Source of the DNA: Choristocarpus tenellus KU-1152
Lineage: Eukaryota > Protista > Phaeophyceae
Assembly: GCA_964200185.2 (NCBI GenBank)
Contig: CAXNAD020000071.1
Coordinates: forward strand, 1 to 32,342
DNA length: 32,342 bases
Reading direction: 5' to 3'
Position numbers and translations under genes: made by a program. The notes under the pieces are model-generated. The model was not told the DNA's origin, ran no database searches, and saw nothing but the letters and a program-made list of their open reading frames with translations. Positions 1 to 32,342 of the stretch are shown here, piece after piece (positions within the stretch are counted from its first letter, which is position 1; every line of letters starts with the position of its first letter).

Positions 1-16
1 AGTCCCCTCTTTGGTA
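1..16 (+). tRNA. trnL: 3' part of tRNA-Leu(UAG), continued from the window end (circular junction)
   Basis: AGTCCCCT-CTTTGGT-A completes the T arm (AGGGG-TTCAAGT-CCCCT) and acceptor stem (GCCAAGG/CTTTGGT) of the tRNA starting at 32278. Confidence 0.95.
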
Positions 17-394
17 ATGCCATCTATAAATCAATTATTACGTAAAGCAAGATCTTTAAAAAAAAAAAAAAAAAAAAGTTCCAGTCTTGAAGGTTGTCCT
101 CAAAAACGTGGTATTTGTCTTAAACTTTTTATTAGATCTCCTAAAAAACCTAATTCAGCTAGACGTCGTGTAACACGTCTTAAATTGTCGAACAAATTTA
201 AATTGACAGCATATATCCCGGGTCAAGTAAATAGTTTACAGGAGCATTCGCATGTTCTTGTAAGAGGTGGTAGGGTTCCTGATTTACCTGGTGTTAATTA
301 TCATTTAATTCGTAATAAACTTGATTTAGCTGGTTTAGGTAATCGAAAAAATGCTCGTTCTAAATACGGTACAAAAAAGAGAAAGTTATGGTAA
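17..394 (+). CDS. rps12: ribosomal protein S12
   Basis: [27 protein letters not shown] and RSKYG motifs; ATG at 17 directly follows trnL, and the track's TTG start lies inside the tRNA. Confidence 0.97.
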
Positions 395-846
395 AATCTG
401 ATATTATATTACAACCCTGTTTAATTAAAATAAGAAATTTACTTATACGGGATGGTAAAAAATCAAAAGCAGATCGTTTATTGGTTTCTACTTTTTCATT
501 TTTAGAAAAATCTTATCCTGGGGAAAGTAGATCTATTTTTTATCGTGCCATTTCAAATGTACAACCAATAGTGGGTGTTCGCCTTAAAGAACGTCGTGGT
601 CGTAAAAAAACTTCAAATAAAGTGTCTTATTTACCATATTCTATTTCTGCAGCAAGAAGCCAAAATATAGGAATACGATCTTTAATTAAAGCTAGTCGTC
701 GTCATTCTTCTAAATTGTATTATATAAATTTAGCTGAGGAATTTATTTTGGCTTCTCAATTTAAAGGTCAAGCTATTAAAATAAAGCTTCATATTCATGA
801 ACTTGCTAAGAAAAATAGTGATTTTTCTCATTTTCGTTGGAATTAA
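388..846 (+). CDS. rps7: ribosomal protein S7
   Basis: DGKKSKA and HELAKKN..FSHFRW motifs; follows rps12 as in the str operon. Confidence 0.9.
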
Positions 847-848
847 TA

Positions 849-1151
849 ATGTATCCTATTCAATATTGTTCGCTTACTGTATTAATATTTTTGATTGGTG
901 TAAGTGGTGTTGTTTTGAATCGTACCAATCTTTTATCGGTACTAATCTCCTTAGAACTTGCTCTTTTATCCGTAAGTTTAAATTTTATTATTTTTTCCAT
1001 TTATTTAGATGATATTATAGGACAAGTTTTTGCTCTTTTTATTTTATGTATTGCAGCTTGTGAATCTTCAATTGGTTTAGCTATTATTTTAGTTTATTAT
1101 AGAGTTCGTGGTAGTATTAGAATTGATCATGCTTCTTTAATAAAATCATAA
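849..1151 (+). CDS. nad4L: NADH dehydrogenase subunit 4L
   Basis: LNRTNLL..SLEL, DDIIGQVFAL and AACESSIGLA motifs; ATG at 849. Confidence 0.96.
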   Translation: MYPIQYCSLTVLIFLIGVSGVVLNRTNLLSVLISLELALLSVSLNFIIFSIYLDDIIGQVFALFILCIAACESSIGLAIILVYYRVRGSIRIDHASLIKS

Positions 1152-1165
1152 AATTTCTATAGTTA

Positions 1166-1246
1166 GCTTCTATGATGAAATTGGTAGACATGTAAGATTC
1201 AAAATCTTTTGTTAAAAACGTGCTGGTTCAAGTCCGGCTAGGAGTA
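1166..1246 (+). tRNA. trnL: tRNA-Leu(CAA)
   Basis: acceptor GCTTCTA/TAGGAGT, loop TT-CAA-AA, long variable arm, GGTTCAAGTCC. Confidence 0.92.
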
Positions 1247-1250
1247 TAAA

Positions 1251-1634
1251 ATGATTCATGTAGAAAGTTTTGTTAAGGTAGTTGATAATTCTGGGGCTAA
1301 AATGGCCAAATGTATTAAAGTAAAATCTAAATCAGGACACTCCTTTGCTCGTGTCGGTGATATTGTAGTAGTTTCTATTCAGAGTTTACGTCCGTATTAT
1401 GGTAAAGATAAAATTAAAATCAAAAAATCAGATGTTATGTTAGCTGTGGTAGTTCAGACAAAGTTTTCTTTTAATTCTAAACAATATAGATTTTTAGGGT
1501 TTGATTTAAATTCCGTTGTTTTAATTACTCAAAAAAAAAAAGCTATTGGTACAAGAATTTTTTCTGTTTTACCTCGTTCATTACGTGGAATAAAATGGTC
1601 TAAATTGGCTACTATATCCAAAGCATTAATTTAA
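1251..1634 (+). CDS. rpl14: ribosomal protein L14
   Basis: VVDNSGAKMAKCIKV, VGDIVVVS and GTRIF motifs. Confidence 0.96.
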   Translation: MIHVESFVKVVDNSGAKMAKCIKVKSKSGHSFARVGDIVVVSIQSLRPYYGKDKIKIKKSDVMLAVVVQTKFSFNSKQYRFLGFDLNSVVLITQKKKAIGTRIFSVLPRSLRGIKWSKLATISKALI

Positions 1635-2188
1635 TGTATATTTTTTCTAATCATTATCATGAGGTTATTCAATCTGATTTTTTATTGGTACAACCTTCAA
1701 TTGGATTATATAGTTTTCCGAATATTAATAAAATAGTAATTAGTTTAGGAAGTGATATACAATCAGAAGATAAAATTTTATCTTCTCTTTGTTTTTTAGA
1801 TCTTTTAGGATGTCAAAAACCTTTTTTAACACGAATTAGAATATCTTCAAAATCTAAATTTTTAAATAAAGGTTCTGTAATTGGAGGTAAATCTACTTTA
1901 AGACGGTCTTCCATATATTCATTTTTGCATAAAATTCTATTTGGATTTTTACCTAAAGTTCGTCAATTTGAAGGATTACCTTTGTTAAAACACCCTAAAA
2001 CTTTTAGTTTTATTGTTCAAGATCTTTTTATTTTTGAAGATTTAAGTTTTTTGTTCTCTTTTTTTGAAGATTTAGGTCCATTGTTTATTGATTTTACTTT
2101 TTATTCAAAAAATATAGAACAAACATTTTTTTTAATTCGAAGTTTCCAATTTTGTATTCGCGAAAGTAACTCAGTTGGTAGAGTGTAA
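1634..2188 (+). CDS. rpl5: ribosomal protein L5
   Basis: follows rpl14; P.INKIVI, GCQKP and G.KSTLR motifs; stop codon lies inside trnG. Confidence 0.88.
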   Translation: MYIFSNHYHEVIQSDFLLVQPSIGLYSFPNINKIVISLGSDIQSEDKILSSLCFLDLLGCQKPFLTRIRISSKSKFLNKGSVIGGKSTLRRSSIYSFLHKILFGFLPKVRQFEGLPLLKHPKTFSFIVQDLFIFEDLSFLFSFFEDLGPLFIDFTFYSKNIEQTFFLIRSFQFCIRESNSVGRV

Positions 2189-2232
2189 GCTTGCCATGCT
2201 TAAAGTCGAGGGTTCAAATCTCTTCTTTCGCT
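2160..2232 (+). tRNA. trnG: tRNA-Gly(GCC)
   Basis: acceptor GCGAAAG/CTTTCGC, anticodon arm TAAGC-TTGCCAT-GCTTA. Confidence 0.95.
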
Positions 2233-2234
2233 AA

Positions 2235-2489
<255 letters not shown>

Positions 2490-2494
2490 GATTA

Positions 2495-2893
2495 TTAAAT
2501 TAATCCATCTTTAATTTTTTTTTTAAGATTACTTTTTAAAATACAAATATGAATAAATTTGTATTGTAAATTTATTATTTTATTTTGTATTTGAATTTTA
2601 TTATAGAATTTTTCATTTATATAACACCCATATATATTATTATTTATTAAATTTATAATATTATTTATATCTTTATATTGTAAAATACCAACATTGTTTC
2701 CTATTATTGTTTTTATATTTATATGTTTCATATTGGAGGTTGAAAGCTTAGTTATTTTTAAATTTTTAAAAGTTTGTTTTAGTTTTATAATTTGATTGTT
2801 TTTTATATTAGCCCAGTTAATAATAATAAAAAATTTTTCTTTACTCAAAAATTTAAGTTTTAGTTTTTTGTAAATATTTCTTAATTTTTTCAT
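2495..2893 (-). CDS. highly divergent AT-rich basic ORF, candidate ribosomal protein L10
   Basis: 132-aa ORF directly downstream of rpl16 in the reverse-strand r-protein cluster; size and weak pattern (FFIII.W.NI....I.KLKQ) fit L10, but no firm motif is visible. Confidence 0.5.
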   Translation of the reverse strand: MKKLRNIYKKLKLKFLSKEKFFIIINWANIKNNQIIKLKQTFKNLKITKLSTSNMKHINIKTIIGNNVGILQYKDINNIINLINNNIYGCYINEKFYNKIQIQNKIINLQYKFIHICILKSNLKKKIKDGLI

Positions 2894-2895
2894 TT

Positions 2896-3315
2896 TTAAA
2901 AGCTATTATACACAATTTTAGTTTTAATGGGAAGTTTATTACTTCCATTTTTTAAAGCTTCCTTACCTTCTTTTTTTGGAATTCCTGCTAAAATAAAAAT
3001 AGGTTTCCCAGGATTAACTCGTCCAATCCATAATTCTACTTTACCTTTACCTTTACCTATTCTTGAGGAGGATGCCTTATGACTAATTCCCAAATCAGGT
3101 AATAAACAAATTCTTAGTTGACCTTTACGCTTTAATTTACGCCTAATACTTTGTCTTGCTGCTTCTAATTGTCTTCCTGTTAGATGACCTGATTCTAGAG
3201 CTATTGTTATAATGGTTGATTTTGGTTCTAGATTTTGATTTGTATTTTTTATTTTGTCTGATTTTCGAGGTTTGAAGAATTTTTGAAATTTTATTTTTTT
3301 TGGTTGTAAAAACAT
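2896..3315 (-). CDS. rpl16: ribosomal protein L16
   Basis: MFLQPKKIKF.K, QLEAARQ, R(M)GKGKG and KLPIKTK motifs. Confidence 0.96.
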   Translation of the reverse strand: MFLQPKKIKFQKFFKPRKSDKIKNTNQNLEPKSTIITIALESGHLTGRQLEAARQSIRRKLKRKGQLRICLLPDLGISHKASSSRIGKGKGKVELWIGRVNPGKPIFILAGIPKKEGKEALKNGSNKLPIKTKIVYNSF

Positions 3316-4165
3316 ATTTAATTTTTTTTCTTTTTTTTTGATTAGGGCATACCCATACTTTAAAACCTACACTACCGTAAGCTGTTTGGGTATCTTTAAA
3401 AATAGCTTGAATAGGTGTTTGGATTTGTTGTAATTGTAAACGTCCTAACTGATATTTCCATTTTATACTTCGTCCTTTAGGTTTATGGGAGTATCTTCCG
3501 TGTATATAAATACGTAGTCCTTCAATTTTATGTTTTGATACAAACGAATTAAAACCTTCTTTTAAAAATTTAAGAAATTCAAAATGTCTTTTTCTTTTTT
3601 GTTTACTTCGAAGTTGTTTTATTAAAAAAAAACTTAAGCTAAGAGCACTAGCTTTACCTTGTGCTACTAAGTTTATTAGTTGAAGTCCTGCACGTGCGTA
3701 AGGGTATTTTGTAATATTAAATCTTTTTATGTAAAAACTTATTTTTTGTCTTACAATTTTAGGTACTTCTCTGGTATATGTTTTAATTCGTTTAATTTTA
3801 AATTTAATTTTTTTGCAACCTGTTAATTTTTGGATTATTGGTTGTACTTTCTTAAATCGGAAAGCTAATTGTGGCCAAGAAGCACTCTTTTTAGTTTTTT
3901 TTTTAGTAGCTCTTTTTCTTTTAAAACGTTTATTTTTAGCTGTAGGATGTAAATGAATTAATTTCAATTCTATAAGAATAAAATCATGAAAACGACTTAA
4001 TTTTAATTCATCAATATAGATTGGGGTATTACGCGCACAAGCTTGTAATAATTTAGTAATCTGTATATTTAAATGGTGAAATTGTGCATGATTCCAATGA
4101 GCGCATCCTTGAGATGCGCCATAATCTGGACGAAGGCTGGATGGATGTGTTTGTTGTGCTATCAT
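3143..4165 (-). CDS. rps3: ribosomal protein S3 (3' end runs into rpl16)
   Basis: AQQTHPSSLR N-terminus, EGLRIYIHGR and TAYGSVGFKVWV C-terminal domain; lies between rps19 and rpl16. Confidence 0.9.
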   Translation of the reverse strand: MIAQQTHPSSLRPDYGASQGCAHWNHAQFHHLNIQITKLLQACARNTPIYIDELKLSRFHDFILIELKLIHLHPTAKNKRFKRKRATKKKTKKSASWPQLAFRFKKVQPIIQKLTGCKKIKFKIKRIKTYTREVPKIVRQKISFYIKRFNITKYPYARAGLQLINLVAQGKASALSLSFFLIKQLRSKQKRKRHFEFLKFLKEGFNSFVSKHKIEGLRIYIHGRYSHKPKGRSIKWKYQLGRLQLQQIQTPIQAIFKDTQTAYGSVGFKVWVCPNQKKRKKIKYVFTTKKNKISKILQTSKIRQNKKYKSKSRTKINHYNNSSRIRSSNRKTIRSSKTKY

Positions 4166-4419
4166 GTATTTTTTTTACGTATTTTTTTTTTTTGTGCATT
4201 ATAATTTTTTCTACTTGGAGAAAACTCACCTAGTTTATGCCCTACTATTTCTTGGGTGATTAATTTTGTAGTTACTTTTTGTCCGTTATGGATTTTAATT
4301 TTTGTTCCTACAAGAGGAGGTAAAATAGTTGAACGACGTGACCAGCAAATTTTTTTATTTTTTAAGTATTTAAGTACACTTAATTCGATATAAGGTAATT
4401 TCCATTTAGATCTTGGCAT
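4162..4419 (-). CDS. rps19: ribosomal protein S19
   Basis: MPRSKWK, WSRRSTILP, HNG and VGHKLGEF motifs. Confidence 0.97.
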   Translation of the reverse strand: MPRSKWKLPYIELSVLKYLKNKKICWSRRSTILPPLVGTKIKIHNGQKVTTKLITQEIVGHKLGEFSPSRKNYNAQKKKIRKKNT

Positions 4420-4444
4420 ATAATTATAATTTTAGATGTTTAGT

Positions 4445-5170
4445 TTATTTTCCTTTGGTAGGTTTACCCCATGGTGTTACAGATGGACGTCCTCCTGATG
4501 TTTTTCCTTCCCCCCCCCCATGTGGGTGATCTACCGGATTTATAGCGACTCCTCTTACAATGGGTCGGAATCCGAGCCAACGTGTTTTTCCTGCTTTTCC
4601 AATTTTTATTAAATGGTGGTTTTGATTGGATACAATACCCAAACACGCGATAGTATTTAGGTTAAACCATCTATATTGTCCTGATTTTAGTCGTACTTGC
4701 CCAAAATTATGTGTTTTTTGTAACAATTGACCAAAAGCACCTGGTGCTCTTATTATTTGTCCTTTCCCTCCGGGTTTGTTACATAGATTATGAATTAAAC
4801 TTCCAGTTGTAATATTTTGTAAATATTGACTATATCCATTTTGTCCTTGATCTGATCGTGATCGAATTATATCCCCCTTTTTTATATTAGTTGTTGCTAG
4901 AATATAATTATGTTGTTTATTATCTGGGTCAAAAATACGTCCTAAAAAAGCAGATCGATTTGGATCGTATTCTAATCCTATTACAATACCTTTTGTTGAA
5001 ATACGAGTAAAATCTACATTACGATATAATCTGGAATGCCCTCCTCCTCGGTGCCAAACAGTAATTTTACCTTGATTATTTCGTCCAGTAGATTTTATTT
5101 TTGGTGAAGTTTTTGATTTTAATTTTTTATCTTTAATAAAAATTGTATTTAATTTTGATTTAATTCTCAT
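4445..5170 (-). CDS. rpl2: ribosomal protein L2
   Basis: GRNNQGKITVWHRGGG, EYDPNRSA and NPVDHPHGGGEGK..TPWGKP motifs. Confidence 0.98.
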   Translation of the reverse strand: MRIKSKLNTIFIKDKKLKSKTSPKIKSTGRNNQGKITVWHRGGGHSRLYRNVDFTRISTKGIVIGLEYDPNRSAFLGRIFDPDNKQHNYILATTNIKKGDIIRSRSDQGQNGYSQYLQNITTGSLIHNLCNKPGGKGQIIRAPGAFGQLLQKTHNFGQVRLKSGQYRWFNLNTIACLGIVSNQNHHLIKIGKAGKTRWLGFRPIVRGVAINPVDHPHGGGEGKTSGGRPSVTPWGKPTKGK

Positions 5171-5181
5171 ATTTTTATAAT

Positions 5182-5532
5182 ATGTCTTATATTGCTGGTA
5201 AAGCTCTTTCTGAAAATAAAATGTTGGTTAAAGCTTTATCCCATATTTTTGGGATTGGTTTTTATCAATCTAAAATTGTATGTCAAAAAGCAGGTTTAAG
5301 TCCAGATGCCCGTCTTAGGGATTTGAATTTAGATCGTAAAAAAGAATTTATTTCTTTTGTAGAAGGATTACCTCTTGTTTTAGGTAAAGATTTATCTCGA
5401 TTTAATAAAGATCATATTCGTCTTTTAAAACGTATTAATTGTTATCGTGGTATAAGGCATCGTAAAGGTTTACCGGTTCGTGGACAACGTACCCATACTA
5501 ATTCAAAACCTCGCAAAATTCTTAAATTTTAA
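5182..5532 (+). CDS. rps13: ribosomal protein S13
   Basis: IFGIG and CYRGIRHRKGLPVRGQRTHTN motifs. Confidence 0.97.
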   Translation: MSYIAGKALSENKMLVKALSHIFGIGFYQSKIVCQKAGLSPDARLRDLNLDRKKEFISFVEGLPLVLGKDLSRFNKDHIRLLKRINCYRGIRHRKGLPVRGQRTHTNSKPRKILKF

Positions 5533-7788: not shown

Positions 7789-10813
<3,025 letters not shown>

Positions 10814-10854
10814 AATTTTGTTTTTAAAGTATTCCGAAGATAGCTATTTCTCAA

Positions 10855-10934
10855 TAGCTTAGGGGTTAATGTGTCACTTAATAAGGTCGATTTTATAATA
10901 TATAATATCGGAGGTTCAAATCCTCCTCACATTA
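10855..10934 (+). pseudogene. degenerate tRNA-like element
   Basis: perfect T arm GGAGG-TTCAAAT-CCTCC, D-arm-like TAGCTTAGGGGTTA, TAATGTG/CACATTA pairing, but no coherent cloverleaf. Confidence 0.6.
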
Positions 10935-10955
10935 AATGTCTAAATTTATTTAATA

Positions 10956-11027
10956 AGGCCTATAACTCAGGGGTAGAGTATACGCCTGATAAGCGTAAAG
11001 TCAGTAGTTCAAATCTACTTAGGCCTA
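10956..11027 (+). tRNA. trnI: tRNA-Ile(GAU)
   Basis: acceptor AGGCCTA/TAGGCCT, TACGC-CTGATAA-GCGTA. Confidence 0.96.
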
Positions 11028-11028
11028 C

Positions 11029-11790
11029 ATGTTTGAAAAAAGTATAAAAACTTTAGATTTCTCTCAAATACCTGAATTATTTTGGCCTGGGATTCCTATT
11101 TTTTTAGGAGTATATTTGGTTGGTCACGGTATTCATTTATTGGCTGAGGTTTGTTCAGGTTCTACTCTTAATAATGAGCCTGACAAATCCAGCAATAAAG
11201 ATATCGATAAAAATCCTCAGGAATCCTCCCCTGAGTCATCCCCTGAATTTGACAGTGAGGATGAAGAAGAGAGGCTTATTAGATATTTTGAGCTAAAAAC
11301 CACCCCCGATGAGGAGGAAAGGATTGCAAAATATAATAAGATGATAGAGGAGACGAATCGAGAAATCGATAAACTCCGTCAACAGATTTATACCCAGGAA
11401 CATCCGGACCTGGGCCAAAGTGGTGACGGTGGTGATGATGATAATAATAAATTTAATCTGATTAAATTTATTATTGAAAAAATCACCTCTAATATCGATT
11501 GTTTTTCTGGTATTCTTGTAAATGTGTTGCCTGACTTTATCGTATCTACGATAGGGCTTTTTTTACCTTTACCTTTTGTGTTATGCAAGAAGGTTTTTCT
11601 ATTGTATAGAAAAATGGGTTATTTGATTGTTCGAGCCACAGGTATCGAATTTTATAATGTATTTTTACCTAAATGGACAAAATATGTTATTTTTAAAAAT
11701 AATTTCCCTATTGCATTTCTTTTAGGTAAAGCTGTAATTGGTTTATTCTATTTTGTGCTTGGTTATGGTCTTTTGTATATGTATCTTTGA
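11029..11790 (+). CDS. orphan ORF253, putative membrane protein
   Basis: 762-nt open frame filling the trnI-trnK gap; hydrophobic ends and an acidic low-complexity middle; no family recognised. Confidence 0.7.
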   Translation: MFEKSIKTLDFSQIPELFWPGIPIFLGVYLVGHGIHLLAEVCSGSTLNNEPDKSSNKDIDKNPQESSPESSPEFDSEDEEERLIRYFELKTTPDEEERIAKYNKMIEETNREIDKLRQQIYTQEHPDLGQSGDGGDDDNNKFNLIKFIIEKITSNIDCFSGILVNVLPDFIVSTIGLFLPLPFVLCKKVFLLYRKMGYLIVRATGIEFYNVFLPKWTKYVIFKNNFPIAFLLGKAVIGLFYFVLGYGLLYMYL

Positions 11791-11815
11791 ATTGGATACT
11801 ACTACATAATTGTTC

Positions 11816-11888
11816 TGTCGTATAGCTCAGTTGGTAGAGCATTGGATTTTTAATCCAGTGGTCCAGGGTTCAAGCCCCTGTATGACTA
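11816..11888 (+). tRNA. trnK: tRNA-Lys(UUU)
   Basis: TTGGA-TTTTTAA-TCCAG arm, T arm CAGGG-TTCAAGC-CCCTG; 1:72 pair is T.T. Confidence 0.92.
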
Positions 11889-11929
11889 TATAATGTTAAC
11901 CTTAATTAACATTTTTAATTGCTATTTTT

Positions 11930-12208
11930 ATGCCTCAATTTGATCATATTAGTTTTTTTAACCAAGTTTTTTGGTTAGTTATTTTATTTTGTAGTTTTTA
12001 TTTTTGTACAGTATGGTTTAGTCTTCCTTTGTTAGCAAGTAGTTTGAAGGCTCGTCGTAAAAAGGAAGTATTAGAATCAATAATGGTTTTAAATTATAAC
12101 AAAAATTTAAAATATTCTCGTCCTTTATCCAATCATAATAAAGTACGAGTTACAAAGCTTTCAGGTTTTAGTTTATCTGCTAGTTCTGGGTTTTATGTTT
12201 TTTTTTAA
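11930..12208 (+). CDS. atp8: ATP synthase subunit 8
   Basis: MPQFD N-terminus, one TM helix, then LKARRK. Confidence 0.93.
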   Translation: MPQFDHISFFNQVFWLVILFCSFYFCTVWFSLPLLASSLKARRKKEVLESIMVLNYNKNLKYSRPLSNHNKVRVTKLSGFSLSASSGFYVFF

Positions 12209-12211
12209 TTA

Positions 12212-12760
12212 ATGTCCGTATATTTTATAAATCATTTAACTACTCTTCTTCCCTTACGCAGTTATTATATCTTCGATAAAGAAATTATTATTATGGTTGA
12301 TAAAAAAGATCTTTTTTATTGTTTATCTTTTTTAAAATACCATACAAATACCCAGTTTAAAATTTTGACTTGTATTTCTGGAGTGGATTATCCTGAAAAA
12401 TATGATCGTTTTGAGATCGTTTACGATTTATTAAGTTTGAGTTTTAATACTCGTATTCGTATTAAAACTCAAACTAAAGAAGTTGAGCCTATTTCTTCTA
12501 TTGTTAGTATTTTTTCTGGAGCAAATTGGTGGGAAAGAGAAATTTGGGATTTATTCGGAGTTTTTTTTTCTTCTCACCCAGATCTTCGTCGTATTCTAAC
12601 AGATTATGGTTTTGAGGGTCATCCAATACGAAAAGATTTTCCATTATCTGGTTATTCTGAACTTAGATATGATGAAGAGCAAAAACTTGTTATTTATGAA
12701 AATTTAGAGCTTGGTCAGGAGTTTCGGGCTTTTAATTTTCATACTCCTTGGTCTAATTAA
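12212..12760 (+). CDS. nad9: NADH dehydrogenase subunit 9
   Basis: [11 protein letters not shown] and [23 protein letters not shown] motifs. Confidence 0.98.
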
Positions 12761-12789
12761 TTGTTATTTAGGGCTTGTTTATAATTTTT

Positions 12790-13947
12790 ATGTCAAGATG
12801 GAATGTTAATACTCTAACAGCGTGGTTTGACTCTCATATTATTGATTATCCCACTGCAATAAATTTAAATTATACTTGGAGTTTTGGTTCAGCTGCTGGC
12901 TTTTGTCTTGCTATTCAAATTTTAAGTGGAACTTTTCTTGCTATACATTATACAGGTGAAATTAATTATGCTTTCTCCAGTGTAGAATACATTATACGTG
13001 ATGTAAATAATGGCTGGTTAATTCGTTATTTACATGCAAATGGAGCATCTTTTTTTTTTATTGTTGTATATTGTCATTTATTTCGTGGTTTATATTATGG
13101 TTCTTTTAATGAACCTCGTCAATTTTTATGGTGGTCTGGTATTGTTATTTTTTTATTGATGATAGCGACTGCTTTTTTGGGTTATGTTTTACCTTGGGGT
13201 CAAATAAGTTTTTGGGGTGTTACTGTAATTACTAATCTCTTTTCCATTATTCCTGTTTATAGTGGGACTTTTGTTATATGGCTTTGGGGTGGTTATACAG
13301 TAGGAAATCCAACTTTAAATCGTTTTTATAGTTTACATTATATTTTACCTTTTGTTATTGCTGGTTTAGTTTTTGTTCATCTGGGTTTATTGCATAAAGA
13401 TGGTTCTAATAATCCAATAGGAATTAAAAATAAATTAGCTAATTTAGATTTTTATCCTTATTTTTATGTTAAAGATTTAGTAGGTTTTTTTGTTTTACTT
13501 GCTTTTTTATCTTTTTTTACTTTTTATATACCTAATTATTTAGGTCATCCAGATAATTATATCCCGGCTGATTCTATTAAAACACCTCTACATATTGTTC
13601 CTGAATGGTATTTTCTTCCTTTTTATGCAGTTTTAAAAGCAATTCCCCATAAAACTGGAGGTATTTTAGCTATAGGTGGTGCAATTTTTATTTTTTTTCT
13701 TATTCCATTTTTAAATCGTCCTGGTATTAGAAGTGGTAATTTTCGTCCTATTTATGAATTTTTTTTTTGTGTTTTTGCCGGTAATTTTTTTATTTTAATT
13801 TGGTCAGGCGCGTGTCCTTCAAATGATGAATTCTTTGAATTATGTAATAGGATTCTTACTGCATTTTATTTTCTTTTCTTTTATATCAGTAATTATACTT
13901 CAGGTATTTGGGAAAAGGATTTTAATCGTATTCTATTAAAAAAATGA
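12790..13947 (+). CDS. cob: apocytochrome b
   Basis: [17 protein letters not shown](M)SFWG and [10 protein letters not shown] motifs; first ATG at 12790. Confidence 0.98.
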
Positions 13948-14165
13948 AAATAGTGCGTAGTATAACTTTTTTTTCAGATGGAAGTTCTTCTTTTTTAAGT
14001 CGTCCCTATCTCTGTACTTCACTTTTTTTTAATATACAATTACATGATGTAGATAATCATTCATTTTGGTCAGGCCATAAGGTAAAAGATCAAACTCAAG
14101 TTTCTGCTTTTGTTTCTACCTTTTTCGAAGTAAATCGTATTTTGGAAAAAAAAAATTCTTTATAA
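13944..14165 (+). CDS. rpl31: probable ribosomal protein L31
   Basis: 73 aa; FSDGS and D..NH.FW resemble L31 (DGS / D...HPFY.G); ATGA overlap with the cob stop. Confidence 0.65.
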
Positions 14166-14181
14166 TTATAATTTTATACCT

Positions 14182-15081
14182 ATGAAAAAACCCTCAGATT
14201 TAAAACCCCCCTCAAATTCAAAAAAAAAATTAGATTATGATTCTATTGAGGATTATGTTATTGTTTTTACTAGCGCAGTGTGTCTTACAATTTTATATTT
14301 TGAGAATGGTGAAATGGATGCAGCCAACCCTTGGCAGTTAGGTTTTCAAGATCCTGCCACTCCTATTATAGAAGGTATTATTTATTTTAATAACCAATTA
14401 ATATTTCTTATGATTGTTGTTGGTAGTTTTGTTTGTTGGATATTATACCGTGCTTTAACTTTATTTAATAAGGATATTCATCCAACACCTATTATTTTTA
14501 CGCATTCGACTGATTTGGAAGTAGTTTGGACTATTACTCCAGCTTTAATTCTTATAATTATTGGTTTTCCTTCTTTTGCTCTTCTTTATTCTATAGGTGA
14601 GATAATTGATCCTTCTATTACTTTGAAAGTCGTAGGACATCAATGGTATTGGTCTTATGAATATTCAGATTATCTTTCTTGGTCTGATAATAATAAATCT
14701 ATTCTTTTTGATTCTTATCTTATTCCCGAGGAGGATCTTTCTATTCCAAAACCATATGGCCCTAAAGCAAAAGTTGGTACTGTTTTGCGCTTATTAGAAG
14801 TAGATAATCGTGTTATTCTACCTGTTAATACACATATTAGAGTTTTAGTTACATCAGCTGATGTTTTACATTCTTGGGCTGTTCCTAGTTTAGGTGTAAA
14901 AGTTGATTCTTGTCCTGGTAGATTAAATCAGATTTGTCTTTTTTTAAAACGTAAGTCAGTTTTTTATGGTCAATGTAGTGAAATTTGTGGAGTTAATCAT
15001 GGTTTTATACCTATTGTGGTTCAATCAGTTAGTATGGAAAATTATATTAGTTGGATTGGGAAAAGATTAAAAGAAGATTAA
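14182..15081 (+). CDS. cox2: cytochrome c oxidase subunit 2
   Basis: [28 protein letters not shown] and [11 protein letters not shown](M)P CuA motifs; alternative ATG at 14314. Confidence 0.97.
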
Positions 15082-20914: not shown

Positions 20915-22111
20915 ATGGGTTTAAAAAAAAGTGAATTTCAGTGTAAACTTCAACATTTTACTATTAATTTTGGTCCACAACATCCAGCAGCTCATGGTGT
21001 ACTCCGTTTAATTTTAGAATTAAAAGGAGAGGTTGTTAAAAGAGCTGATCCTCATATTGGTCTTCTTCATAGGGGAACTGAAAAATTAATTGAGTCTAAA
21101 ACTTATCTTCAAGCTTTACCTTATTTCGATCGTTTAGATTATGTTTCTATAATATGCCAAGAGCATACTTATGTTTTAGCTGTTGAAAAACTTTTACAAA
21201 CTTCTATCCCAATACGTGCTCAATACATTAGAGTATTGTTTGCAGAAATTACTAGAATTTTAAATCATTTACTAGCTGTTGGTTGTCATGCTATAGATGT
21301 AGGTGCTATAACTCCTTTTTTATGGGCATTTGAAGAACGAGAAAAATTGATAGAGTTTTATGAGAGAGTCAGTGGTGCTCGTATACATGCTAGTTTTTTT
21401 CGTCCAGGTGGTGTTAGCCAGGATCTTTGCTTAGGTTTATTGGATGATATTTATTTTTTTGCTACTCAATTTAGTGAACGTTTAGATGAAATGGAGGAAA
21501 TATTGACAAATAATCCAATTTGGAAACAACGTTTAGTTGATATCGGTATTGTTAAAGGAAAAGATGCTTTAGATTGGGGTTTTTCCGGTGTAATGCTTAG
21601 AGGTTCTGGTTTAATTTGGGATTTAAGAAAAAATCAACCTTATGAGGTTTATTCAGATTTAAATTTTAATATAGCTTTAGGAACAAATGGAGATTGTTAT
21701 GACCGTTATTTAATTAGAGTTGAGGAAATAAGACAATCTCTTCATTTAATTCATCAATGTTTAAATAAAATACCTAAAGGTTCTATTAAAGTTGAAGATG
21801 GTAAATTAAGTTCTCCCTCACGTGTACACATTAAGCAAAGTATGGAAGCTTTAATTCATCATTTTAAGTTATATACAGAAGGTTTTATTCCGCCTGCTGG
21901 AGAAACTTATACTGCTACTGAAGCACCTAAAGGTGAGTTTGGTGTTTATTTAATTTCAAAGGGTATTAATAAACCATATCGATGTAAAATTAAAGCTCCA
22001 GGTTTTGCTCATTTACAAGCATTAGATTTTATATCAAAATCTCATATGTTAGCTGATGTTGTTACAATTATTGGTACACAAGATATTGTTTTTGGAGAAG
22101 TAGATCGTTAA
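20915..22111 (+). CDS. nad7: NADH dehydrogenase subunit 7
   Basis: [25 protein letters not shown] and DIVFGEVDR motifs. Confidence 0.99.
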
Positions 22112-23836: not shown

Positions 23837-23850
23837 TTTTTTATTTATTT

Positions 23851-23954
23851 AGAAATATTTTTTTCTGTTTAGACCCATACCCGAAATCATACCGAACTCG
23901 AGAGTTATTGTCTGAACTGCCAAACATACTGAGAAATCTTGGGAACCATGGCAA
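23851..23954 (+). rRNA. rrn5: divergent 5S rRNA, probably permuted
   Basis: loop-C-like ATCATACCGAACTCG; helix GTTTAGAC/GTCTGAAC; domain gamma TGCCA..ATACT..TGGGAA..TGGCA. Confidence 0.78.
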
Positions 23955-24026
23955 GGGGATATATGTCAGTGGTAGACTATATGCTTTGCAAGCATAAAGT
24001 CGGCGGTTCGATCCCGTCTATCTCCA
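23955..24026 (+). tRNA. trnA: tRNA-Ala(UGC)
   Basis: acceptor GGGGATA/TATCTCC with G3.U70, TATGC-TTTGCAA-GCATA. Confidence 0.95.
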
Positions 24027-26985: not shown

Positions 26986-26989
26986 ATAT

Positions 26990-27041: not shown

Positions 27042-27063
27042 ATAACCTTTTAATATTACTAAT

Positions 27064-27138
27064 AGCGTTGTGGAGCAGATTGGTTAGCTTATTAGGCTCA
27101 TGCCCTAAAGGTCGTAGGTTCAAATCCTACTGACGCTA
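27064..27138 (+). tRNA. trnM: tRNA-Met(CAU), initiator type
   Basis: acceptor AGCGTTG/TGACGCT, TG-GAGC D stem typical of fMet, TTAGG-CTCATGC-CCTAA. Confidence 0.9.
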
Positions 27139-27178
27139 AACAAATAGCTTTTTATTTAGTATCGGATCTTCTGCGATA

Positions 27179-27204
27179 GGGGGGAGGGTTAAGGGAGGGG
27201 GGGG
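27179..27204 (+). other. G tract G6-A-G3-TTAA-G3-A-G8 (G-quadruplex motif)
   Basis: four runs of at least 3 G with 1-4-nt loops in an otherwise very AT-rich genome. Confidence 0.75.
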
Positions 27205-27208
27205 TTAA

Positions 27209-27291
27209 ACAATCTTGGTGGAATCGGTAGACACGTCAGACTTAAAATCTGTTTCTAATTTAGAGTATCGGTTCAAGTCCGTTAGATTGTA
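27209..27291 (+). tRNA. trnL: tRNA-Leu(UAA)
   Basis: acceptor ACAATCT/AGATTGT, loop CT-TAA-AA, long variable arm. Confidence 0.94.
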
Positions 27292-27296
27292 TTAAA

Positions 27297-27369
27297 AGCA
27301 GGATAGTTCAGATGCTAGAACAATGGGCTCATAATCCATATGCCGGGGGTTGGAATCCCTCTCTTGCTA
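27297..27369 (+). tRNA. trnM: tRNA(CAU), probably elongator Met
   Basis: acceptor AGCAGGA/TCTTGCT, ATGGG-CTCATAA-TCCAT; atypical D loop (GC) and T loop (TTGGAAT). Confidence 0.85.
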
Positions 27370-27378
27370 TTTTTTTCT

Positions 27379-27453
27379 GGTAGTTATAACTCAGTTGGTT
27401 AGAGTATCAGGTTGTGGCTCTGAAAGTCGGGAGTTCAAATCTCCTTTTCTACC
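27379..27453 (+). tRNA. trnH: tRNA-His(GUG)
   Basis: encoded G-1 with C73, loop TT-GTG-GC; two T.T mismatches in the acceptor stem. Confidence 0.92.
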
Positions 27454-27469
27454 CTTAATTTAATATAAT

Positions 27470-27540
27470 GACTTGGTAGCATAATGGTAATGTTTTGGTT
27501 TGCAAATCCAATAATAGGGGTTCAAGTCCCCTCCTAGTCT
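27470..27540 (+). tRNA. trnC: tRNA-Cys(GCA)
   Basis: acceptor GACTTGG/CCTAGTC, loop TT-GCA-AA, U73. Confidence 0.92.
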
Positions 27541-27547
27541 ATTCTAT

Positions 27548-27620
27548 TCCTTAATAGCTCATTAGGTAGAGCATATGGCTGTTAACCATAGGGTGATAGG
27601 TTCAAGTCCTATTTAAGGAG
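27548..27620 (+). tRNA. trnN: tRNA-Asn(GUU)
   Basis: acceptor TCCTTAA/TTAAGGA, TATGG-CTGTTAA-CCATA. Confidence 0.96.
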
Positions 27621-27636
27621 TTTACCTATTTAATTA

Positions 27637-27708
27637 GTCCAGGTAGCTCAGAGGTAGAGCGAAAGACTGAAAATCTTTAGGTCAGTGGTTCAAACCCGCT
27701 TCCGGACA
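27637..27708 (+). tRNA. trnF: tRNA-Phe(GAA)
   Basis: acceptor GTCCAGG/TCCGGAC, AAAGA-CTGAAAA-TCTTT. Confidence 0.95.
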
Positions 27709-27711
27709 ATA

Positions 27712-28089
27712 ATGAAATCTCTTTCAGATATATTTACTCGTATTAGAAATGGCCAAATAGTATATAAAACATTTATTATTATACCTTCGGTTAATATTTG
27801 TTTAAAAGTTTTAAATATTATATGGGATGAAGGTTTTATTCAGGGTTATTCTCGTAGTAAAAATAACGAAATTTATATTATACTACGTTATATTAATGGT
27901 AGACCCGCTATTCGTCAGCTTACTGCTGTATCTCGTCCAAGTCAAAGAATTTATATCTCATCTTTGGATTTATGTCGTTTAAAGCCTAATTTGGGTCTTT
28001 TAATTTTATCAACCCCTAAAGGTATTATGAATATGGAAGATGCTATTTATCAGACTCAAGGTGGTGAAGTACTATGTTATATCGTATGA
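27712..28089 (+). CDS. rps8: ribosomal protein S8
   Basis: LSD(M)FTRIRNG, EGFIQGY, SRPSQRIY, LSTPKGIM and GGEVLC motifs. Confidence 0.96.
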   Translation: MKSLSDIFTRIRNGQIVYKTFIIIPSVNICLKVLNIIWDEGFIQGYSRSKNNEIYIILRYINGRPAIRQLTAVSRPSQRIYISSLDLCRLKPNLGLLILSTPKGIMNMEDAIYQTQGGEVLCYIV

Positions 28090-28565
28090 TAATTAGATTA
28101 CCTCCAGGTGTTTATTTTATTAATCAAAATGGAAAAACAATTTTAAAAGGACCACAAGGTAATTTAATTTTAAAATTAAATTTTAAAGCTATTCAAAAGA
28201 AAAATGTTCTTTTTATTATAGTTTCTATTACTAATAAAGAATATTGTGAGTTGATTCAAGCTTTATTAGGGGTTGGTTTATCTTATTATAAAGAACTTTA
28301 TTTAGAGGGGGTTGGTTATCGTGTAATTCAAAAAGAAAATACTTTAATTTTCGAATTAGGTTATAGCCATCCAATTTCTATTTTTATTCCTTCGAAAATT
28401 AAAGTAAAATGTGTAAAAAATAAACTTTTTCTTAAATCTTGTGATTTACAGTATTTAAATAGGTTTTGTTCTTATTTGCGTAAATTTCGTTTTCCTGATC
28501 CTTATAAGGGTAAAGGTATTTTATATGTTGGAGAAAAATTAATTAGAAAAGAAGGAAAGATTTAG
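28086..28565 (+). CDS. rpl6: ribosomal protein L6
   Basis: KGPQG, GVGYRV, LGYSHP and PDPYKGKGI motifs; ATGA overlap with rps8. Confidence 0.96.
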   Translation: MIIRLPPGVYFINQNGKTILKGPQGNLILKLNFKAIQKKNVLFIIVSITNKEYCELIQALLGVGLSYYKELYLEGVGYRVIQKENTLIFELGYSHPISIFIPSKIKVKCVKNKLFLKSCDLQYLNRFCSYLRKFRFPDPYKGKGILYVGEKLIRKEGKI

Positions 28566-28571
28566 TTATTT

Positions 28572-29099
28572 ATGAAAACCAAATTTATTAAACATAAATC
28601 TTTATTTCAATATTTGATTAAAAAAAAAGCTTATATAGGTCCACCTTTACCATATTTAGATTGTTCTTTATATCCATTTTTACATGGTAAAATAAATCAT
28701 TTTTCTATTTATGACTTACAACAAAGTCTATTCATTTTAATCCAAGTTTTAAAGCTAGTTGAAAAATTAATTAGTGATGGTGGTAAAATTCTTTTTGTTG
28801 GTCCACCTAAAAAGTTTATAAAATCCATACATTATATTCCAGGTATTTCGGTATGTTCTAAGTGTGTATCGGATATTCGTTCATCAACTAATATAGATTT
28901 AATTATTATTTATAATGTAAATTCTAAAATACTCTATGAGGCTAAACAAAAAGGGGTTCCTATTGTAGGATTTGGTGGTTTAAATTTTAAATACGTAGAT
29001 TATCCAGTTAGTTTAAATTTTAATGATAAAAATTTATTTAAGTGGCATATATACCTATTAGTACAGGCAATTATAAGGGGCTTTAATATTCGTTTTTAA
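28572..29099 (+). CDS. rps2: ribosomal protein S2 (divergent)
   Basis: IYDLQQS, GGKILFVG and EAKQKGVPIVG..VDYP motifs; rps8-rpl6-rps2-rps4 order. Confidence 0.85.
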   Translation: MKTKFIKHKSLFQYLIKKKAYIGPPLPYLDCSLYPFLHGKINHFSIYDLQQSLFILIQVLKLVEKLISDGGKILFVGPPKKFIKSIHYIPGISVCSKCVSDIRSSTNIDLIIIYNVNSKILYEAKQKGVPIVGFGGLNFKYVDYPVSLNFNDKNLFKWHIYLLVQAIIRGFNIRF

Positions 29100-29126
29100 A
29101 TGTTATTTTGATGTTATTAATAATAT

Positions 29127-29846
29127 ATGAGATTAAAACCTAAATATAAATCTTGTATTTGGACTAAAACTGATATTTGGGGAGATTTATTAAATAAAAG
29201 AAAATTTTTGCGTCTTAAATGGGTTAAGACTTTTCGTATTTTAAAAGGACAAAAACGTCGTCGTAGAAGGAGGTTATATAAAGATTATAACTTTATAAAA
29301 ACACGAAATAGATCAAATATTATTTTTAAATACCGAAAATGGGCTTTCCGTAATTATATAATATCTAATTTTTGTATAAAACGTTTTTATGGAGACCTTA
29401 AAGATAAATCATTTAGATTATTATGTAAAAAGATATGGAAATATCCATCTCCGTATTATTCTTTAATTCAATCTTTAGAAAGTAGGTTGGATACTACTCT
29501 TTTTCGTTTAGGTCTTTTCCCAACTATTTCAGCTAGTTCTCAATCAATTAAGCATGGAATAGTTAGTGTTAACCATTGTAAAATAACTTCTTCATCTTAT
29601 CGTGTGAAACCAGGAGATTTAATTGAAATTATACCAAATTATCGTAAAATTGTTAAGTATAAAATTGGTCTTTTATATAGTAAAAGATTTCCTCGCTGGA
29701 AAATTAGTAATACTTTATCTTGGGTTGAAACTGATTACCCAAGTATAAGCTTTTTAATTTTAGATATCGTTAATCCTAAAGAAGTTTTTTACCCTTTTCG
29801 TTTAAATTTAGATGATATTTTGTGGTCTTCTCGGTTTTATTTCTAA
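29127..29846 (+). CDS. rps4: ribosomal protein S4
   Basis: LESRLDTTLFR, Q.IKHG.V.VN and SYRVKPGD S4-domain motifs. Confidence 0.93.
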   Translation: MRLKPKYKSCIWTKTDIWGDLLNKRKFLRLKWVKTFRILKGQKRRRRRRLYKDYNFIKTRNRSNIIFKYRKWAFRNYIISNFCIKRFYGDLKDKSFRLLCKKIWKYPSPYYSLIQSLESRLDTTLFRLGLFPTISASSQSIKHGIVSVNHCKITSSSYRVKPGDLIEIIPNYRKIVKYKIGLLYSKRFPRWKISNTLSWVETDYPSISFLILDIVNPKEVFYPFRLNLDDILWSSRFYF

Positions 29847-29861
29847 TTCAAGTTTTAAAAA

Positions 29862-30833
29862 ATGAATTTTATTTTTTCTTTATTTACAATTCTTAGTCTT
29901 ATCATTCCTTTATTGGTTGCAGTAGCTTATTTCACTTTAGCAGAACGTAAAATTATAGCAAGTATTCAACGCCGACGTGGCCCTAATGTTATTGGTTTTA
30001 TGGGTTTACTTCAACCATTAGCCGATGGTTTAAAACTTTTTGTAAAAGAAACTGTATTACCCACAAATGCAAATACAGTATTGTTTCTTTTAGCACCAAT
30101 AGTAAGTTTTTTTTTAAGTTTAATTGCATGGGCAGTTATTCCTTTTGGCTATGGTCAAGTTGTGTCTGATATTGATTTAGGTTTATTATACTCGTTATCC
30201 ATTTCTTCTTTAGGTGTATATGGAGTTTTAATTTCAGGTTGGTCTAGTAATTCTAAATATGCTTTCTTAGGTGGTTTAAGATCTGCGGCTCAAATAATTT
30301 CTTATGAAGTTTGTATAGGTTTTCTTTTAGTAAATTTAATTCTTTGTGCTGGTTCTGCTAATTTGACTGAAATTGTTTTAGCACAAAAAGAGGTTTGGTT
30401 TATTGTTCCTCTTTTACCTATTAGTATTTTGTTTTTTATTTGTTGTTTAGCAGAAACTAATCGTCATCCTTTTGATTTGCCTGAAGCTGAAGCTGAATTA
30501 GTTTCAGGTTATAATGTTGAATATTCTGCGATAGGTTTTGCTCTTTTTTTTTTAGGCGAATATGCTAATATGCTAGTTATAAGTGCATTAACCTCTATTT
30601 TTTTTTTTGGTGGTTGGTTGCCTATTTTTTCTTTTATATATGTACCATGTGGTATTTGGTTAGGTTTAAAAATTTCATTTTTTGTTATTTTTTTCATTTG
30701 GGTTCGTGCTATTTTACCGCGTTATCGTTATGATCAACTTATAGAATTGGGGTGGAAATGCTTCATTCCGCTGTCCGTGGGTTTTTTATTATTAACCGCG
30801 GGAATTTTATTATCATTCAATTGGCTAAACTAG
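29862..30833 (+). CDS. nad1: NADH dehydrogenase subunit 1
   Basis: [45 protein letters not shown] and PRYRYDQL motifs. Confidence 0.99.
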
Positions 30834-30856
30834 CCAATTGAATGATAATAAAATTC
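30802..30856. terminator. perfect 26-bp inverted repeat followed by T tracts at the nad1/tatC convergence
   Basis: GAATTTTATTATCATTCAATTGGCTA-AAC-TAGCCAATTGAATGATAATAAAATTC, then TTTT-G-T14. Confidence 0.75.
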
Positions 30857-30867
30857 TTTTGTTTTTT

Positions 30868-30923
30868 TTTTTTTTAAGTTTATTATTATAATTACTTTTT
30901 TTTAAGTTTATTATTATAATTAC
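30868..30923. repeat. 28-nt tandem duplication at the tatC 3' end
   Basis: T8-AAGTTTATTATTATAATTAC occurs twice (30868-30895 and 30896-30923). Confidence 0.9.
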
Positions 30924-31608
30924 TTATCATACAAAGTATAAATCTCCAACTTTCATACAATAAAATTATAGGTGATACAACAAAAATTTGAGTTGTAAAA
31001 TTTGGTGGACTTAATAATGCTCCTATTAGACAAAATAATATATATATTATTCGTCTGTGGTTAGTTCCTAGTATTTTTAAAAGTATATTATTTATACGTA
31101 AAAATACAAGTCCAAATGGTACCACAAAATTTAATCCTAATCCTATTAATTCTAGATAATACAAGTACTCATTAAGTTGAGGCTCATAATTAAGCTGGAT
31201 AGTAGTAAATTCTTTTGTATATCCATATAAAAGTTCCCAACTTATTTGTATTAAGTAAGGTCCACAAAACAAAAATAAAAAAATGTATAAAATTGCTCCT
31301 TGCATTAAGATTTTTCTTATTTTTCTTGCTTCAGAGGCATAAAGGGCTGGTTTAACAAAATAATATACTTGTAAAATTGTCATAACTACCCCAGATTGTA
31401 CGCTTATAAATAGACAAAGTCTTAAATATGCATAAAAAATATCTGTAGGTTGGTTACTTACAAAGTGTGTGAATCCTTTTGGAATCAATATAAAAAGCAA
31501 AGTTTCTTTGTAACAGAAGGTTAGAATAAAAATTAAGCATATTGTAAAACCAATATATAGTGCTCTAAATTTTAATTCATTGAAATATTTAATATAAACG
31601 TCTACCAT
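30892..31608 (-). CDS. tatC: twin-arginine translocase subunit C
   Basis: YFNELKFR, PTDIFYAYL, YYFVKPALY.SE and ALLSPP..TQI....P..LLYE motifs; multiple TM helices. Confidence 0.92.
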   Translation of the reverse strand: MVDVYIKYFNELKFRALYIGFTICLIFILTFCYKETLLFILIPKGFTHFVSNQPTDIFYAYLRLCLFISVQSGVVMTILQVYYFVKPALYASEARKIRKILMQGAILYIFLFLFCGPYLIQISWELLYGYTKEFTTIQLNYEPQLNEYLYYLELIGLGLNFVVPFGLVFLRINNILLKILGTNHRRIIYILFCLIGALLSPPNFTTQIFVVSPIILLYESWRFILCMISNYNNKLKKK

Positions 31609-31659
31609 TTTAATTACAAGTTGGTTTTTTTTGGTATTTCTTTTATTAGTACACATGTT

Positions 31660-32004
31660 ATGAAAAATATAAATTATTCTTTTTATGATTTTAAATATAG
31701 ATTATACGACTGTGAGGTTTGGTATCAATCCACAAGTTTAAAAACACTTCGTTATTGGCTTTCAATTTTACCTGTTAAAGATTTTAATTTAAAATCTTTA
31801 CCTACAAGGCGTAAAAGATTTACTCTTCTTAGATCCCCGCTAGGTAATAAAATATCTAAAGATCAGTATGAAGAAATTTCTTATTGTGGATTTTTATCGT
31901 TACGCAGTGCAAATCCAGGAAAAATTTTAGGATTTTTAGGTTTACTCCTTAAACCTATAGGGGTTAAGGTTAAAATTAGAGTCGGCATCGGTGTAGGGAG
32001 ATAG
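31660..32004 (+). CDS. rps10: ribosomal protein S10
   Basis: LPTRRKRFTLLRSP..NK.SKDQYE motif; TAG stop lies inside trnW. Confidence 0.9.
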   Translation: MKNINYSFYDFKYRLYDCEVWYQSTSLKTLRYWLSILPVKDFNLKSLPTRRKRFTLLRSPLGNKISKDQYEEISYCGFLSLRSANPGKILGFLGLLLKPIGVKVKIRVGIGVGR

Positions 32005-32067
32005 TTCAATCGGCAGAACATTGGTCTCCAAAACCAAAGGTTGGGGGTTCAAGTCCCTTTCTTCCTG
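31995..32067 (+). tRNA. trnW: tRNA-Trp(CCA)
   Basis: acceptor AGGGAGA/TCTTCCT, TTGGT-CTCCAAA-ACCAA. Confidence 0.96.
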
Positions 32068-32192
32068 TTGATTAATTCTTGTTTCCATTTTTTAATCTTA
32101 ATATGGAAACGATTAATTAATCTTGGTATATCAGTAAAAAACAAAAGTCCTACAAATAATATAATTAATAAAGAAGAGATATTAAATTTCAT
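32049..32192 (-). CDS. tatA: probable twin-arginine translocase subunit A (47 aa)
   Basis: MKFNISSLLIILFVGLLFFTDIPRL..: short TM helix, F-hinge, (I)P and basic amphipathic helix; same strand as and upstream of tatC. Confidence 0.7.
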   Translation of the reverse strand: MKFNISSLLIILFVGLLFFTDIPRLINRFHIKIKKWKQELINRKKGT

Positions 32193-32205
32193 ATTTATAA
32201 AATTA

Positions 32206-32277
32206 TGGAGTCTAGCCAAGATGGTAAGGCGCCCGTTTTTGGTGCGGGGAACGTAGGTTCGAGTCCTGCGACTCCAG
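32206..32277 (+). tRNA. trnQ: tRNA-Gln(UUG)
   Basis: acceptor TGGAGTC/GACTCCA, CCCGT-TTTTGGT-GCGGG. Confidence 0.95.
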
Positions 32278-32342
32278 GCCAAGGTGGTGGAAATGGTATA
32301 CACGCTGGGTTTAGGTTCCAGTCCTATACGGTTAGGGGTTCA
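32278..32342 (+). tRNA. trnL: tRNA-Leu(UAG), 5' part (ends at bases 1-16)
   Basis: GCCAAGG-TG-GTG-GAAATGGTATA-CAC, loop TT-TAG-GT, long variable arm, T arm split by the window edge. Confidence 0.94.

Follow-up and report, generated by a model that had tools for sequence, protein, structure and literature searches.

Among the described mitochondrial genetic codes, NCBI translation tables 2 (vertebrate), 3 (yeast), 5 (invertebrate), 13 (ascidian), and 21 (trematode) assign AUA to methionine (Met), all of them together with the reading of UGA as tryptophan (Trp), and most of them also alter AGR or CUN. The stretch of DNA analyzed here, hereafter the window, is the whole 32,342-base-pair (bp) mitochondrial genome of the brown alga Choristocarpus tenellus (Discosporangiales), in which, judging from its sequence, AUA has very probably been reassigned from isoleucine (Ile) to Met, with UGA, AGR, CUN, and all other codons standard. 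Like those five tables, this genome would read AUA as Met and has no gene for the lysidine-modified transfer RNA (tRNA) for Ile; unlike them, it uses UGA only as a stop, AGA and AGG as arginine (Arg), and CUN as leucine (Leu). A first-pass annotation of the window had proposed AUA as Met with UGA kept as stop, a proposal that is supported by the codon-residue statistics, the tRNA set, and the alignment of the CuA site of cox2.

AUA=Met has been described in yeasts, animals, Xanthophyceae, and Pycnococcus (PMC6551751), and possibly in Scenedesminia (PMC6821328). The report for the Xanthophyceae (Ehara et al. 1997, J Mol Evol 45:119, as cited in PMC6551751), which the first-pass annotation had rightly mentioned, concerns a class of ochrophytes related to the brown algae in which this one sense codon has likewise changed; the origin in Choristocarpus appears to be separate, nested in the brown algae beside Discosporangium, in which ATA is Ile. 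In the green alga Pycnococcus provasolii (Noutahi et al. 2019, PMC6551751), ATA likewise stands at Met-dominant positions, and there are likewise two tRNA genes with the anticodon CAU, hereafter tRNA(CAU), versus three in relatives, the loss of trnI(CAU) having been proposed as the trigger. Pycnococcus differs from Choristocarpus in reading UGA as Trp and in having a second tRNA(CAU) that is divergent and of uncertain origin (PMC6551751), whereas the elongator retained in Choristocarpus belongs clearly to a conserved brown-algal Met group. The likely functional analogue is the animal tRNA-Met(CAU), which reads AUG and AUA and in which AUA capture needs 5-formylcytidine at C34 (f5C34; NSUN3/ALKBH1; PMC5372736, PMC10033821). 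Animals use one tRNA-Met for initiation and elongation, whereas Choristocarpus has separate initiator and elongator genes.

ATA codons at conserved methionine positions

The genes cox1, nad7, and nad1 were each aligned to about 118 homologues and cob to 150 diverse cluster representatives, and a column was taken as conserved when one residue was common to at least 80% of the homologues. At the conserved columns of these four genes, ATA fell on Met in 23/23 cases and on Ile in 0/23, ATG fell on Met in 11/11, and ATT fell on Ile in 47/52, the last bearing out the earlier statement that conserved Ile is encoded by ATT (ATA versus ATT, Fisher's test, p = 8e-20). In cox1, 13 of the 15 ATA codons (residues 52, 86, 92, 107, 118, 192, 199, 297, 358, 403, 437, 448, and 456) stood on columns in which Met ranked first or second in frequency across 119 homologues, and the remaining two lay in the unconserved N-terminus. 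Moreover, every Met motif that the first-pass annotation had listed in cox1, cox2, cob, nad7, and rpl2 was present with ATA at the residue in question, at the following positions:

9284..10813, + strand: cox1, with 15 ATA codons
9557-9559, 9602-9604, 9635-9637, 9857-9859, 10490-10492, 10625-10627, and 10649-10651, + strand: ATA codons of the cox1 motifs
13204..13206, + strand: cob WGQ[ATA]SFW, in a column that is Met in 136/149 diverse representatives
15007..15009, + strand: cox2 HGF[ATA]P, the position of the CuA methionine ligand
21149..21154, + strand: nad7 VS[ATA][ATA], two successive codons, both columns Met in 119/119 homologues
21383-21385, + strand: nad7 R[ATA]H
4541..4543, - strand: rpl2 GVA[ATA]NP

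The cox2 codon aligned to the CuA Met of solved cytochrome oxidases (PDB chains 7jro_b and 8c8q_B).

In addition, the mitochondrial genomes (mitogenomes) of Discosporangium (L004, L007) and Dictyota (L009, L010, L013) were aligned codon by codon with the window across all genes. At columns where these two agreed, ATA in the window stood opposite Met 60 times, Leu 8, valine (Val) 4, threonine 2, and phenylalanine, serine, and Ile once each (n = 77), a residue profile indistinguishable from that of ATG (p = 0.79) and unlike that of ATT (p = 1e-35). The outcome that had been named as contradicting the proposal, namely ATA columns lying mainly at conserved Ile, was thus absent from both comparisons (0/23 and 1/77 at Ile). 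ATA in the window faced ATG of Discosporangium at 106 of 238 aligned sites and ATT, ATC, or ATA at about 27, and ATA of Discosporangium faced ATT or ATC of the window at 74 of 163 sites and ATA at only 10. The reverse test placed ATA at Ile in 79% (Discosporangium) and 66% (Dictyota) of cases, indicating that both read ATA in the standard way.

For all other sense codons with enough data, the standard residue was the top match; the sole other deviant was TGC, on a single column only. AGA matched Arg in 89% and AGG in 93% of cases, CTN matched Leu in 85-100%, and TGG matched Trp. ATA was far more frequent than ATG (248 vs 88), making up 74% of the Met codons. As a start codon, ATA was required by no gene, most genes having ATG and a few having only GTG or TTG candidates.

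UGA as a stop codon

No in-frame TGA occurred inside the 35 counted open reading frames (ORFs), and TGA terminated seven ORFs, namely rps19, rps11, nad2, orf253, cob, nad3, and rps8, the lengths of which match those of their Discosporangium orthologues. The first-pass annotation had named five of these (rps11, nad2, cob, nad3, and rps8) and had given Trp as TGG with trnW(CCA); both statements were confirmed, with rps19 and orf253 as additional cases and with 141 TGG codons in the window. The two features concerned are:

13945..13947, + strand: TGA stop codon of cob
31994..32068, + strand: trnW(CCA), reading UGG only

A trnW(CCA) that reads UGG alone agrees with UGA remaining a stop codon.

Genes for tRNA(CAU)

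The window carries 22 tRNA genes, only two of which have the anticodon CAU and none UAU. Ochrophyte mitogenomes normally have three tRNA(CAU) genes, one for the initiator, one for Met in elongation, and one for a tRNA-Ile that decodes AUA by virtue of its lysidine modification (PMC7936722; PMC13449250); three were found in each of Discosporangium, Dictyota, Sphacelaria, and a kelp/Fucales-type contig (L019), and two in Choristocarpus. A third tRNA(CAU), or a tRNA(UAU), was not found by ARAGORN at the 80% and 70% thresholds with and without introns, by Infernal at E <= 1, by blastn-short, or by nhmmer with group profiles, the only returns being spurious matches within genes and a single degenerate element. 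The features that bear on the decoding of AUA are:

27063..27139, + strand: trnfM, initiator-type tRNA(CAU), with an A11:U24 pair, weak pairing at 1:72, and CUCAUGC as its anticodon loop
27297..27369, + strand: sole elongator-type tRNA(CAU), of the Met elongator ('x') group, the presumed reader of AUG and AUA
10956..11028, + strand: trnI(GAU), reading AUU and AUC, the only tRNA-Ile gene
32069..32205, no strand: trnW-trnQ spacer, the site of a third tRNA(CAU) in Dictyota, Sphacelaria, and L019
10870..10934, + strand: degenerate tRNA-like element downstream of cox1, detected by ARAGORN only at the lowered threshold

Identity between the initiator gene and the equivalent genes of Discosporangium, Dictyota, and a Fucus-type contig (L011) was 84-88%. 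In Dictyota, Sphacelaria, and L019, the two elongator-type tRNA(CAU) genes separated clearly into groups 'x' and 'y', each at a conserved location: x upstream of rps8 in the cluster M-L(uaa)-H-C-N-F, and y between trnW and trnQ. Group 'x' was taken to be elongator Met and group 'y' to be trnI(CAU) on the grounds that both AUA=Met lineages retain x and lack y, that y is similar to trnI(GAU) in its acceptor stem, and that the D-arm and T-arm of y are like those of plant mitochondrial trnI(CAU). The gene at 27297-27369 lies in the x cluster and scored 36.8 bits on the x profile, with no match on the y profile. Discosporangium has one gene, Dis_b, scoring 39.5 bits on the x profile and another, Dis_a, which was the only tRNA(CAU) of Choristocarpus or Discosporangium to score on y. 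A profile search of the trnW-trnQ spacer of the window detected no tRNA and no tRNA remnant.

The element at 10870-10934 is no credible tRNA and gave no match with Infernal at E <= 1. Its homologue in Discosporangium (L004:11537-11613) is a well-folded tRNA-like gene with an 8-nucleotide anticodon loop (ARAGORN anticodon 'aaat'), and the T-arm of the Choristocarpus element matches that of Dis_b over 17/17 bases.

A single nuclear locus resembling TilS (lysidine synthetase) was identified on the minus strand at G000:C2761:8210-9158, with two exons scoring 71 and 43 bits, and presumably serves the plastid tRNA-Ile(CAU); such a locus is expected for the plastid and does not discriminate between the explanations considered below.

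As to the structure of the tRNA at 27297-27369, its D-loop reads ...AGATGCTA... and its T-loop TTGGAAT, and the tertiary pair G19:C56 is apparently swapped to C19:G56, unlike every compared relative. A weakened 31:39 pair in the anticodon stem was considered as the cause of AUA reading and rejected, given that x-type tRNAs of standard-code genomes (Sphacelaria, L019) also have a non-Watson-Crick 31:39. The trnW-trnQ spacer, which is conserved in Discosporangium, holds an ORF of 47 amino acids (aa) at 32052-32192 on the minus strand, with a hydrophobic helix followed by a basic stretch; it is reminiscent of the short mitochondrial tatA, and it has no Pfam match.

Alternative explanations

Several points qualify the case for a reassignment of AUA. 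At the columns conserved between Discosporangium and Dictyota, 17 of the 77 ATA codons aligned to residues other than Met, chiefly Leu and Val, which is only weak counter-evidence because ATG spreads in the same way. Dis_a was only weakly y-like (19.9 bits on y versus 30.2 bits on x), and the labels of the two groups were drawn from synteny, co-absence, stem likeness, and likeness to plant mitochondrial trnI(CAU) rather than from an annotated reference. Contigs from four sequencing runs of unknown kind, none of them recorded as RNA, were identical to the DNA over 9284-15081 (5,798 letters), which is uninformative on editing if the runs are DNA. Transcriptome-derived protein copies were not found, the protein clusters containing only genome-derived records. 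Editing of every AUA in messenger RNA (mRNA) to AUG before translation (third-position A converted to G or I), under an otherwise standard code, is a possibility that the first-pass annotation had raised and would account equally well for ATA at Met sites and for a dispensable trnI(CAU). It would demand about 248 sites, near-complete efficiency, and strict codon specificity, and would leave no unedited ATA for Ile sites, to which just the one codon aligns; no differing base occurs in the contigs of the four runs, whose kind is unknown, and editing of this sort is not known from brown algal or other ochrophyte mitochondria. Editing is therefore rated very unlikely. Ambiguous decoding, with AUA read as Met by tRNA-Met(CAU) and as Ile by wobble of tRNA-Ile(GAU) or by an imported cytosolic tRNA-Ile, would represent an intermediate stage of the kind that a standard model places after trnI(CAU) has been lost (Sengupta et al. 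2007, as discussed in PMC6551751), and the tRNA taken to decode AUA is a putative one. On the other side, ATA provides 74% of the Met codons, fills invariant catalytic or ligand Met sites such as that of CuA, and has been purged from conserved Ile sites, which together indicate a completed, unambiguous change and make ambiguous decoding very unlikely as well.

The standard code itself, with AUA as Ile, would require either that Ile is tolerated at these sites or that the contig is a nuclear pseudogene copy or a mis-assembly, and the nuclear genome does contain pieces copied from the mitochondrion. Tolerance would mean that all 23 conserved columns, including a metal ligand, changed in one lineage while Ile sites encoded by ATT stayed conserved, and the window lacks any tRNA gene that could decode AUA as Ile. 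The genes are intact and without internal stops, the contig forms a full circle of the published size, and its sequence recurs unchanged in four runs, all of which excludes a pseudogene or an artefact of assembly. The codon statistics in effect refute the standard reading, which as a whole is exceedingly improbable. The reassignment of AUA to Met thus remains by far the favored reading of the window.

Phylogenetic placement and independent origin

A cox1 tree was built with all Met-dominated columns masked. In this tree, a check that the first-pass annotation had suggested, Choristocarpus and Discosporangium were sisters (99/94) inside the brown algae and not among the yellow-green algae. Schizocladia, Phaeothamnion, and the other brown algae had Met at these cox1 sites. 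Seven other cox1 matches with Ile at the Met columns formed one clade adjoining Phaeothamnion and apart from Choristocarpus; we take this clade to be xanthophytes. In a member of this Phaeothamnion-adjacent clade (L014 and L012; jgi 3300068088 Ga0617939_0000610, 23,670 bp), ATA stood at Met in 46% of cases versus 18% at Ile, TGA was not used as Trp, and the only tRNA(CAU) genes were the initiator and an x-type gene, with none between trnW and trnQ. The presumed xanthophyte clade shows the same pattern, and AUA=Met with UGA as stop is therefore not unique to Choristocarpus. Since Discosporangium uses the standard code and possesses three tRNA(CAU) genes, the AUA change arose within the Discosporangiales, independently of the presumed xanthophyte clade.

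Proposed route of the reassignment

The match of codons to residues, the set of tRNA genes, and the bracketing by relatives were observed directly; the identity of the AUA-decoding tRNA, any modification of it, and the order of events are inferred. The classical route, attributed to Sengupta et al. (2007) in PMC6551751, is the best supported and consists of loss of the lysidine tRNA-Ile, capture of AUA by tRNA-Met(CAU), and a subsequent reshaping of codon usage. In Choristocarpus, the change most likely began with loss of the gene for the lysidine-modified tRNA-Ile(CAU), which is kept in other brown algae and, in a diverged form, in Discosporangium. The lone elongator tRNA-Met(CAU) at 27297-27369 would then have gained AUA alongside AUG, probably by way of a modification at C34 like that of animal mitochondria. 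Roughly two thirds of the ancestral ATG codons would then have drifted to ATA under AT pressure, and former ATA codons for Ile would have given way to ATT or ATC. More speculatively, this independent reassignment might be young, with the elongator tRNA-Met reading AUA in a manner unlike the animal f5C34, through another modification of C34 or a structural adaptation; we regard this as possible and unlikely.

If the AUA change is true, Choristocarpus would represent the first case of a reassigned sense codon among the brown algae and would add an independent origin of AUA=Met. Together with Discosporangium (cox1 91% identical, ATA as Ile, three tRNA(CAU) genes), it would offer an unusually tight comparison for the loss of the lysidine tRNA and the capture of AUA, and, should the young-reassignment reading hold, the genus pair would be the closest natural before-and-after comparison yet for the most frequent sense-codon change.

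Public records and translation

As the first-pass annotation had pointed out for the translations it was given, the public C. tenellus records also show Ile where the protein would have Met. Public Nad1 (YP_011007971.1 / WBP69802.1) has Ile at every ATA site outside a frameshifted stretch, and public Nad7 is the standard-code translation, thus with Ile at its ATA sites. Public Nad1 differs from the window only within 30609-30689 (nad1 residues 250-276), in a pattern typical of compensating frameshifts that probably reflects indel errors in one of the two assemblies.

No report of AUA=Met in brown algae or in Choristocarpus was found in full-text literature searches, a report in a subscription journal being possible, and the papers that use the C. 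tenellus mitogenome do not mention its genetic code. The standard or the 'protozoan' table has been applied in annotating well over a hundred mitogenomes of brown algae, and no current NCBI table would translate this genome correctly, as it needs AUA=Met, UGA=stop, and the rest standard. About 248 residues, roughly 3% of the mitochondrial protein positions, would accordingly stand mistranslated as Ile in the public records of C. tenellus, and the same error would reach amino-acid supermatrices in which Choristocarpus, as an early-branching lineage, is key to resolving and dating the phylogeny of brown algae.

Genome organization and assembly

The mitogenome occupies a whole contig of a 164-megabase eukaryotic assembly and forms a full circle of 32,342 bp with a guanine-plus-cytosine (GC) content of 30.6%, the same length and GC content tabulated for C. 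tenellus in Table S28 of the Phaeoexplorer preprint (10.1101/2024.02.19.579948). Its protein genes are the usual ochrophyte mitochondrial set. The main features are:

1..32342, + strand: complete circular mitogenome, carrying orf253 in addition to 35 standard protein genes, together with rns, rnl, a permuted 5S ribosomal RNA (rRNA), and 22 tRNA genes
32278..16, across the contig junction: trnL(uag), one of the 22 tRNA genes, found by ARAGORN in circular mode
23850-23955: permuted mitochondrial 5S rRNA (Rfam mtPerm-5S, 87.6 bits), directly between rns and trnA
11029-11790: orf253, between trnI(GAU) and trnK, ending in TGA and outside the 35 standard genes

The gene trnL(uag) spans both ends of the contig, which is therefore a complete circle; linear scans overlook this gene, which may explain the counts of 22 versus 24 tRNA genes in the literature. 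The orf253 product has hydrophobic ends and an acidic low-complexity middle, and Pfam searches with orf253, orf132, and the small tatA-like ORF gave no significant match.

The closest named relatives were sequences of Discosporangium mesarthrocarpum, with identities of 91% for cox1, 86% for nad7, and 82% for nad1. A TARA contig (L008, P0121) appeared by bit score to be a near relative and was rejected as the mitogenome of an unrelated protist in which the genes are ordered differently.

Fragments of the mitogenome have been copied into the nuclear genome at G000:C7931:2442-2801, C5629:2040-2199, C13528:3583-3677, C3686:3127-3348, and C4585:2277-2429. The nuclear cox1 pieces contain stops, and a nuclear copy of the tRNA cluster is 98% identical to 27336-27695 of the window. 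This copy, in G000:C7931, was considered as a sign of an older gene order without trnM and rejected, as it begins inside trnM(27297) and is therefore uninformative on gene order.

A second, partial mitochondrial contig of 20,532 bp with the same cox1 is present in a public assembly (L006; GCA_964200275.2, CAXNAL020002411.1). Its automatic gene calls join cob and cox2 as one 680-aa product, the TGA stop of cob evidently having been read through.

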